NCBI GenBank assembly: GCA_900088475.1
Contig: FLMG01003442.1
Location: forward strand, 1 to 43,714
Direction of reading: 5' to 3'
DNA length: 43,714 nt
DNA from: Hyphochytrium catenoides
Lineage: Eukaryota > Protista > Hyphochytriomycota
Shown piece after piece: positions 31,214 through 34,200 of this stretch. How positions within the stretch are numbered: the stretch's first letter is position 1; every line of letters starts with the position of its first letter. Position numbers and translations under genes: made by a program. The notes below the pieces were generated by a model. The model saw only the letters and a program-made list of their open reading frames with translations. It was not told the origin of the DNA and made no database searches.

Positions 31214-34200
31214 ATGAGCACCGGAAAACAAGAGATGCCTTCTCTCATTGACAAGCTGCGACTTTGGGCATCGACTAAGGGAGATGAGGTGGGGACCGAG
31301 GTATACGTGATACATCTGGCTCGTGCTCAATACTTTTCCTCCGTGCAGACCGTTTATACCTTTGTGGATGAGAAGGGCCAGCCCACGGAGAGCTTAAGTT
31401 ATCAGGTGCTGCCTCGGGATGGACAGCTCACTGTTAATGCTCACTAACTCTCCCTTTATGGAGACAGGAGCTGAAGGACCAGGCGGAAGTGTTAGCAGCA
31501 CTGTTAATTGGCAACAAGGCAGAAGGGTAAGAAGGCCAGCACCAGCTGAGAGAGAAAGCCGTGCGTCCTTTCGTCCACCTTCTAAATAACTGTTCTCTTC
31601 AGACTTCAGCTCCAACCAGGCGACCGAGTCATGCTCGTCTATACGCCGTCACTGCACTTTGTCGTCGCTTTTTATGCGTGTCTCATTAGCGGAGTCATCG
31701 CCGTCCCTGTGTTTCCACCAGGTTAGCGCAACTCTCGTCCTCTATTTCTTTCAACACCTCATCGTACTGACGGATCACCTTGTCTGCCTAGACCCTCGAA
31801 GACTAGGGAAAGACAACAACATGTTTGTCTCTATCTATAATAGCAGTGGGGCAAAGATAGCCCTTACTAACTCATATCCTTCCTCCAAACCATCCCCCGT
31901 GTTGGCCACTCTGACCTCTAGTTTTAGGGCCTCTGTCTTCCATGGCCTTATGCATGCGCTCTAAACGTCTTTACGCCTTCACTCTCTCTTTCTCTGTACA
32001 TGCCCTCGAAACTTCCTTACGCCTTCACTATCTCTTTATCTACCTCCTGTCACGTCGTGGACCGTCATTCTCAAGCCCTTGATCACACATTCTACTACTA
32101 TATCTCGGCATTACGCTCTGGATGAATGCCTTTCAGTAGCCTTAACTCTTCCATTGCACAGCGTACAATCATATGAAGCATATAACGGCGTTGAAGGAGA
32201 AGTTTACCGTCTCCGGAAAGGTATCGTGGCCAGACCTGCAATGGGTCGTTACTGATGAGCTACTAGCTCGGCGGCGAAAATCCAGTACGCGGTGGCCGTC
32301 TTTGGCTTCCCCTCCTCTTGAGGATGTTGCCTTCCTTCAATACACCTCAGGATCCACATCAGACCCAAAGGTGAGCCGTAATCAGCTTCACCTAAAGGCT
32401 TGCTTCTTACAGAACTCTATCTTAACATCCTCTTCTCCCTTGGCTGCAATTGGTAGGGAGTGATGATAACCCACAAAAATCTGGCACATAATCTATCGAT
32501 TATCATCAAGGCATTGGAAGCCGACGAGACTACTGTCGTCGTTTCGTGGTTGCCCCAATTCCATGACATGGGGCTCATCGGCTCCTGTCTCGGTTCCTGC
32601 TATTGCGGTGGAAGAGCGATCTTCATGTCGCCTCTCACGTTTATCAGGAATCCGCCTCTGTGGATGCAATTGAGTAGCAGATATCAGTATGTCTATGCAG
32701 CTCTGCACCTTGCTCTTGCCTCACTCTTTTCATCTTTGTCTGCGGTTGTTTACACTGCTCAAACCAGCGGCTGAGACTCTACTTCATAGTGCTACGCATC
32801 TACAAGGCCCGAACTTCGCTTTCGCCCTCACAGCTAGGAAGTTCAATGCGCTCCCCATTGCAAGTCGAGGGGAACTCAATTTATCCAGTATTCGGCACAT
32901 CATTAACGGAGCGGAACCTGTAACCTTTCAGTCTATTGATCTCTTTCAATCAACGTTTAGAGAGTACGGCTTGCGAGAAAATGTAAGTAATGCTGAATGA
33001 CAAGTCATCAACTTGCTCGTCGCCGGGAATGGTGAGAGCTGTAGAAGGGGCAGCCATAAATGGATACCAAGGCAAGAGAGACCTAGCACGCCACACGAGC
33101 GCACCATAGGGGATACAAGGCATTAAGATGAAACGCTATCCTAACTTCGGCTCCTTTCACATGTTGCAGATCGTCTTTCCTACTTATGGCTTGGCGGAGC
33201 ACACCGTCTTTGTATGCGACAAAGGCTCTCAACGACTTGCTGTGGACAAACTACTTTTGGAAACAGAAGGTTTGCTGCTATTGTGGGTGCGGGGACTTCG
33301 GTGACCGGCACTATTCTCATCGTCGGTGCTGCAGGAAAAGTTATGCCAGCAGAGGGATCCGCCGCCAAGGAGCTTCTGGGATGCGGACGACCCAAGGATC
33401 ACGGTGTGATTTGCAAGGTTGTTGATCCAGAAGCAAGGATAGAGTTAGAGGAGGGCAGGTATTCTATTCACCTCGCATGGTTCCACCTCAGATTCGTCAT
33501 TAACATTCAGCTCATCAGAGTGGGCGAGATATGGCTGAATAGTGAGTCCAAGGCCAAGGGTTACTGGAGCAACCCGGAGCTAACTGCGAGAGATTTTAAG
33601 GCTACACTTAACGGCTCAGAGAACAAAGAAGGTGTGGCTTTACTCTCAAGCACATCATAAACAGTCTATCAAGGCATGTCATGGCCACAAGCCTAACAAA
33701 CCTACATACACCAAGGCTATCTTCGGACTGGCGATCTGGGCTTTCTTCATGGTGGTGAACTTTTTATCTGTGGTCGGATAAAGGACCTCATCATAATAAG
33801 GGGCAGGAACCACTACCCACAGGTTTGGCCGACCCACTGCTGCATTGTTTTTGATAAGATCCTTAGCATTCTCGTTGGGATCTCTAAATTTCATCTACTT
33901 ATTGACAATGCTCTGTCTTCATTAGGATATAGAAAGGACTATAGAGTCATTTGAGGATGTGCGTCCAGGCTGCTCAGCAGCTGTGTCGTCAACGGAGCAA
34001 GGAGGTTCTGAAGAGCTGAAGCTGATCTGCGAGGCACGAAAGACTCCTACAAGGCGCAAGCCATCTGGTATCTGACAAAATCGTGCCCCATTTCTTTCTC
34101 TTCAGGTTAAGGATGGCACGAAGCCACAGTTTGATACACTTGGGAGTAGAATTCGAGCTCTGGTTGCCAAAGAGCATGGCATCTCTCCAGTCCTTGTCGT

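Follow-up and report, generated by a model that had tools for sequence, protein, structure and literature searches.

The window, by which we mean the whole 43,714-nt stretch of DNA that was analysed, carries a FAAL-ACP gene on the forward strand (31214..35045) that is divided into 17 exons by 16 introns and maintains an open frame of 736 aa. Its neighbours are an Npa1/URB1-like ribosome-biogenesis gene (4387-12515, minus strand), a cyclic-nucleotide-binding ion channel (25913-29413, plus strand) and a TPR-SET protein (39275-41887, minus strand). None of these three neighbours is a component of the minor spliceosome, and an exact protein look-up with the TPR-SET ORF returned no match. The FAAL-ACP model was built by hand from the three forward frames and extends from an ATG at 31214 to a stop codon at 35043-35045. 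In a Pfam search, exons 6 and 7 matched PF00501 (AMP-binding) over profile positions 121-253 without a break at intron 6, and exon 17 matched PF00550 (PP-binding), such that a carrier domain follows the AMP-binding domain; homologues carry PF00501, PF23024 and PF00550. The C-terminus of the model (35013-35045) resembles a CaaX tail on a FAAL-ACP protein.

A search with exon 7 yielded full-length relatives of the predicted protein, and a search with a Phytophthora relative yielded named ones. Over its full length the model was 40-48% identical to stramenopile FAAL-ACP proteins, and no protein more than 48% identical to it was present among the 264 that were fetched. The window's own predicted protein was absent from 1.84 billion representatives, among which the best match to exon 7 was 70% identical. 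When the Aphanomyces orthologue (46% identity to the model) was used as the query, the top solved structures were all FAALs (7R7E-G, 3KXW, FadD23, FadD32 (5HM3), FadD28 and 3PBK), with E-values from 1e-111 to 1e-60 over about 570 residues, and CoA ligases scored far below them. Judged through this orthologue, the predicted gene product resembles proven FAALs more than it does acyl-CoA ligases.

Introns other than intron 5 measured 60-187 nt. The initial annotation had described the introns it resolved, apart from its AT-AC candidate and one probable GC-AG intron, as GT-AG, and this agrees with the complete model, in which 14 are GT-AG and one is GC-AG. The latter, intron 13 (34034..34105, 72 nt, gag/GCACGA...TTCAG/gtt), contains an in-frame TGA, and its removal gave a gapless alignment to eight orthologues. 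Donors of the U2-type introns were very degenerate (GTGGGG, GTGCTG, GTTAGC, GTTTGC, GTTCGA and others). Intron 10 (33459-33518, GT-AG, 60 nt, phase 2) starts with GTATTCTA, matching GTATCCTT at 6/8 positions, and has TCATTAAC at a distance of 15 nt from the intron end. Despite this U12-like or hybrid appearance, it is probably U2-type. A Chrysoparadoxa intron lies 5 nt away from intron 10, and the position is not shared.

Intron 5 (31874-32159, forward strand) is the longest intron of the gene at 286 nt, and begins with ATATCCTTCC. It interrupts the frame in phase 2, between exon 5 (31792..31873), which ends with the TC of a Ser codon, and exon 6 (32160..32370, AMP-binding profile positions 121-178), which starts with the A of that codon; its removal joins TC/A and leaves a continuous reading frame. 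The terminal dinucleotides are AT (31874-31875) and AC (32158..32159), in frame. An AG follows immediately at 32160-32161, inside exon 6, and pairing it with the donor at 31874 results in a frameshift. The 5' splice site ATATCCTT (31874..31881) matches the U12 consensus /RTATCCTT, as quoted in PMC2846911, at 8/8 positions, and the branch-site box GCCTTAAC (32139..32146) matches TCCTTAAC at 7/8. Counted to the last intron base, the spacing is 13 nt from the end of CCTTAAC and 14-15 nt from the presumed branch A (32144 or 32145), the latter distance being inside the U12-type range of about 10-20 nt. The intron start, the spacing of CCTTAAC from the terminal AC, the phase and the coordinates reported by the initial annotation were all borne out when the letters were checked. 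Intron 5 also contains a 43-nt tandem duplication (31953-32041, forward strand) whose two copies are 86% alike. No second copy of intron 5 was found within the 43,714-nt window, and an introner- or repeat-like origin was rejected on this ground.

These signals differ in how much they say about the class of the intron. Boxes of the form CTAAC, CTGAC or TTAAC (CTNAC/TTAAC) also occur in the gene's U2-type introns, 15-31 nt from the 3' end; most lie 19-31 nt from the intron end and two at 15 nt. Since U2-type introns of the same gene carry similar boxes, the branch site of intron 5 discriminates it from them only weakly. It had likewise been claimed that no long polypyrimidine tract follows the branch site. 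The box is followed by only 13 nt, and these and their surroundings are pyrimidine-rich; because the last 18 nt are 78% pyrimidine, a share exceeding that of most U2-type introns in the gene, the polypyrimidine-tract criterion does not discriminate and is unusable here. What decides the class is the 5' splice site. Given the degenerate U2-type donors of this gene, the exact 8-mer at the donor of intron 5 is not a by-product of a local consensus.

The borders of intron 5 were evaluated against a profile built from 183 homologues spanning the junction region. Near the site, 165 in-frame, stop-free pairs were scored, comprising GT-AG, GC-AG, AT-AC, AT-AG and GT-AC combinations. The AT-AC pair 31874-32159 scored 397.8 bits and aligned without a gap across the junction. 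The best GT-AG pair reached 382.0 bits and the best GC-AG pair 380.7, and all pairs of these two types fell at least 15 bits below AT-AC. Residues flanking the junction are strongly conserved (L128 in 174/183 homologues, T129 in 166/183 and Y133 in 154/183), and the AT-AC junction preserves the conserved L-T-x-x-x-Y spacing. The L and T belong to the exon 5 strand GAKIALT (L 174/183, T 166/183). No homologue (0/183) has an insert at the junction, and the sequence within about 13 nt of the required border contains neither a GT nor a GC donor. Based on this comparison, the predicted AT-AC junction suits the protein family best among canonical pairs.

Counted by themselves, the U12 motifs are no more frequent in the window than expected by chance. 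RTATCCTT was observed 3 times vs 2.1 expected, TCCTTAAC with one mismatch 39 times vs 31.6 expected, and a loose donor-plus-branch-site pattern 3 times vs 1.35 in block shuffles, of which 217/300 contained at least one occurrence. Of the two other RTATCCTT occurrences, that at 7956 (plus strand) was rejected as an intron because it lies antisense inside a 1092-aa minus-strand ORF, and that at 37959 (minus strand) because it has no convincing branch site; the second is probably a chance match. The latter lies within ATATCCTTAAG (37949-37959, minus strand), and the ORF downstream of it (ATG 37842, minus strand) encodes a very acidic protein. The evidential weight of the intron 5 motifs comes from their coincidence with exon borders that are fixed independently by homology, and this is their only source of significance. 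As a rough estimate, about 10 allowed places x 2/65536 gives about 3e-4 for the donor, and about 6 allowed places (CCTTAAC 10-15 nt from the acceptor) x 1/16384 gives about 4e-4 for the branch box; the rough joint chance of both boxes falling at the homology-fixed borders is about 1e-7.

U12-type introns have either AT-AC or GT-AG terminal dinucleotides. With the donor, the branch box and the homology-fixed borders in agreement, we consider 31874-32159 to be very probably a U12-type (minor-spliceosome) AT-AC intron of the FAAL-ACP gene. The same proposal in the initial annotation thus finds support in both sequence and homology, from which we infer that the intron is spliced in vivo at these borders by the minor spliceosome. 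Following the established U12 pathway, the U11/U12 di-snRNP would recognise the donor ATATCCTT and the branch-site CCTTAAC together, after which U6atac would take the place of U11 at the donor. The branch A (32144 or 32145) would attack the bond preceding A31874, and the 3' site AC/A would be picked through the short branch distance of 14-15 nt. In the predicted product, TC/A would be fused as a Ser codon, and the cDNA would read ...CTTACTAACTC/AGCGTACAAT... across 31873/32160. The initial annotation also proposed that this genome has an active minor spliceosome; a search of the window for minor snRNA genes with Rfam, at the gathering thresholds and at E<=1, found none, returning only a tRNA and one chance match. 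Its suggestion that splicing of this intron exerts a rate-limiting control on lipid metabolism is speculative.

Three other readings of the locus were considered. The first is removal of the intron by the major (U2-type) spliceosome via a GT donor at 31846 (GTGGGG) or 31921 (GTTTTA) and the AG at 32160-32161, with ATATCCTT being a chance match. Both donor/AG pairs are in frame and stop-free, TTAAC boxes serve U2-type introns of this gene as well, the tract before the AG is pyrimidine-rich, and RTATCCTT as such is no more than chance would supply in the window. Furthermore, intron 1 is modelled with the identical hexamer GTGGGG as its donor, so that splice-site strength would allow a minor U2-type isoform from 31846. 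However, both donors performed worse against the 183 homologues than the AT-AC pair (397.8 bits). The donor at 31846 (363.2 bits) removes the strand conserved in 166-174/183 homologues, and that at 31921 (382.0 bits) adds 15 residues where 0/183 homologues have an insert. U2-type removal would also require an exact 8-mer and an exact 7-mer to occur by chance at borders defined by homology, and we consider it very unlikely. The consequence for annotation foreseen at the outset holds: as the best GT-AG alternatives cost the protein a conserved strand or lengthen it by 15 residues, annotation restricted to GT-AG mis-models the gene, and a gene caller of that kind would truncate or distort it.

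The second reading holds that intron 5 is retained or inefficiently removed, and that the gene is a pseudogene or gives rise mainly to a non-productive, intron-retaining transcript. In its favour, the run search for 31200-34200 listed no RNA run, and retention of intron 5 introduces 33 stops into the read-through translation. Against it, the 17 exons make up an open 736-aa frame that is 40-48% identical to orthologues from end to end and retains the conserved motifs. The open frame, the full-length identity and the intact motifs together are not the pattern of a decaying gene, rendering this reading still less probable than U2-type removal. The last, a non-canonical AT-AG intron shifted by 2 nt (31876-32161) that would yield ..ALTNSSYNHMK.. 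(NSSY instead of NSAY) and a cDNA reading ...AACTCATCGTAC... rather than the ...AACTCAGCGTAC... predicted for AT-AC, equals AT-AC in profile score (398.1 vs 397.8 bits) and places at that column a Ser, which is slightly commoner there than Ala (33 vs 25 of 183), but its intron would start with ATCCTTCC, and we deem it the least credible of the three because the cut falls two bases within the U11/U6atac recognition box, for which AT-AC uses the canonical cut and inside which we know of no intron class that cuts two bases in.

The FAAL-ACP gene had been described as bacterial-like and patchily distributed, a description that did not survive comparison with its relatives. The same FAAL-carrier layout was found in oomycetes, brown algae, Chrysoparadoxa, Pinguiococcus, diatoms, one labyrinthulomycete and one bicosoecid. 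In a maximum likelihood tree of 40 rows (LG+G4, quick search, rooted at the midpoint), the window's protein branched as sister to the oomycetes, which were monophyletic (SH-aLRT 97 and 99). Genomic loci of eight relatives, five of them intron-bearing, were fetched and their introns mapped exactly. Seven introns of the window's gene (1, 2, 3, 4, 6, 12 and 16) have counterparts of identical alignment column and phase in Saprolegnia and Aphanomyces; Phytophthora also shares introns 1-3, and Chrysoparadoxa introns 1 and 12. The shared intron positions and phases, together with the sister relationship to oomycetes, indicate that the FAAL-ACP gene is an old, vertically inherited stramenopile resident rather than a patchy, recent bacterial import. 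It has an AMP-binding domain, with a carrier domain behind it, in common with the bacterial/PKS-loading FAALs that were the best structure matches of the Aphanomyces orthologue (7R7E-G, 3KXW, FadD32 5HM3, FadD23 and 3PBK), but differs from them in being eukaryotic, intron-rich and vertically inherited in stramenopiles. Saprolegnia and Chrysoparadoxa share a further intron, at alignment column 633 in phase 0, that is absent from the window's gene and from Aphanomyces; this distribution suggests that the column-633 intron is ancestral and was lost in both.

Minor splicing has precedents among these relatives. Oomycetes have minor snRNAs and U12 introns (PMC2396436; PMC10639083), the latter numbering a few in Phytophthora, in peptidyl-prolyl isomerase and other genes, and dozens in Saprolegnia (PMC2846911; PMC10639083). 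The U12 AT-AC introns of oomycetes belong to the same class as intron 5 and bear the same signals (/ATATCCTT, TCCTTAAC near the 3' end and a terminal AC), and their hosts are likewise stramenopiles, to whose FAAL-ACP orthologues the window's gene is sister. In contrast to intron 5, they occupy other genes and positions, and the FAAL-ACP genes of Saprolegnia, Aphanomyces and Phytophthora are without an intron at the intron 5 site. Blastocystis sp. ST1, also a stramenopile with minor introns of the AT-AC type, has hundreds of minor introns, 77% of them AT-AC, that are possibly recent gains (PMC10639083). These differ from intron 5 (286 nt, phase 2) in their length of about 40 nt and their bias towards phase 0. 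Because minor splicing is already known in the neighbouring oomycetes, a U12-type intron is to be expected in this oomycete-related lineage, and intron 5 adds one probable minor intron to a known kind.

The question of wider interest is whether intron 5 was gained or lost, since the introns that flank it are conserved in the sister group and intron 5 is not. An intron at its position was not found in any of the 5/5 intron-bearing orthologues examined. In Saprolegnia and Aphanomyces its two neighbours, introns 4 and 6, are both present with their phase unchanged; the genes of Hondaea and of two metagenomic relatives contain no introns and are uninformative on intron 5. Intron sliding was rejected because the nearest ochrophyte introns are offset by 6-7 residues and differ in phase. 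Another eight introns of the window's gene, all U2-type (7-11 and 13-15), are likewise unshared. Documented gains of minor introns are rare. Because intron 5 is absent from five intron-bearing orthologues, a lineage-specific gain of a minor intron in the FAAL-ACP gene after the split from oomycetes, as raised in the initial annotation, is possible, and we advance it tentatively, as somewhat less than an even prospect. The distribution of the intron among orthologues fits such a gain, but fits a loss on the oomycete stem equally, as one loss there and one gain here would be equally parsimonious. Under the gain scenario, AT-AC introns may have proliferated in this genome, as they reputedly did in Blastocystis and Physarum. 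The absence of intron 5 from ochrophytes says little, because ochrophytes are reported to be without minor introns and minor snRNAs (PMC10639083; PMC2396436).

Sequencing runs provided a further view of the locus. Three of them contain 66-81% of the words of the locus, introns included, which identifies them as DNA; three tiny runs with the same species label contain none. DNA contigs over 31200-35100 were continuous through the introns and had no joints. Over the same interval a second haplotype or strain was apparent, diverging by about 2.5% and carrying several 1-nt indels, for the most part in introns. The divergent contig had 20 differences in 31200-32009 and none in 31863-32009, donor included, and this difference-free donor region weakly supports the intron 5 signals. 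The DNA contigs also displayed an allelic bubble with two forms at 31980-32114.
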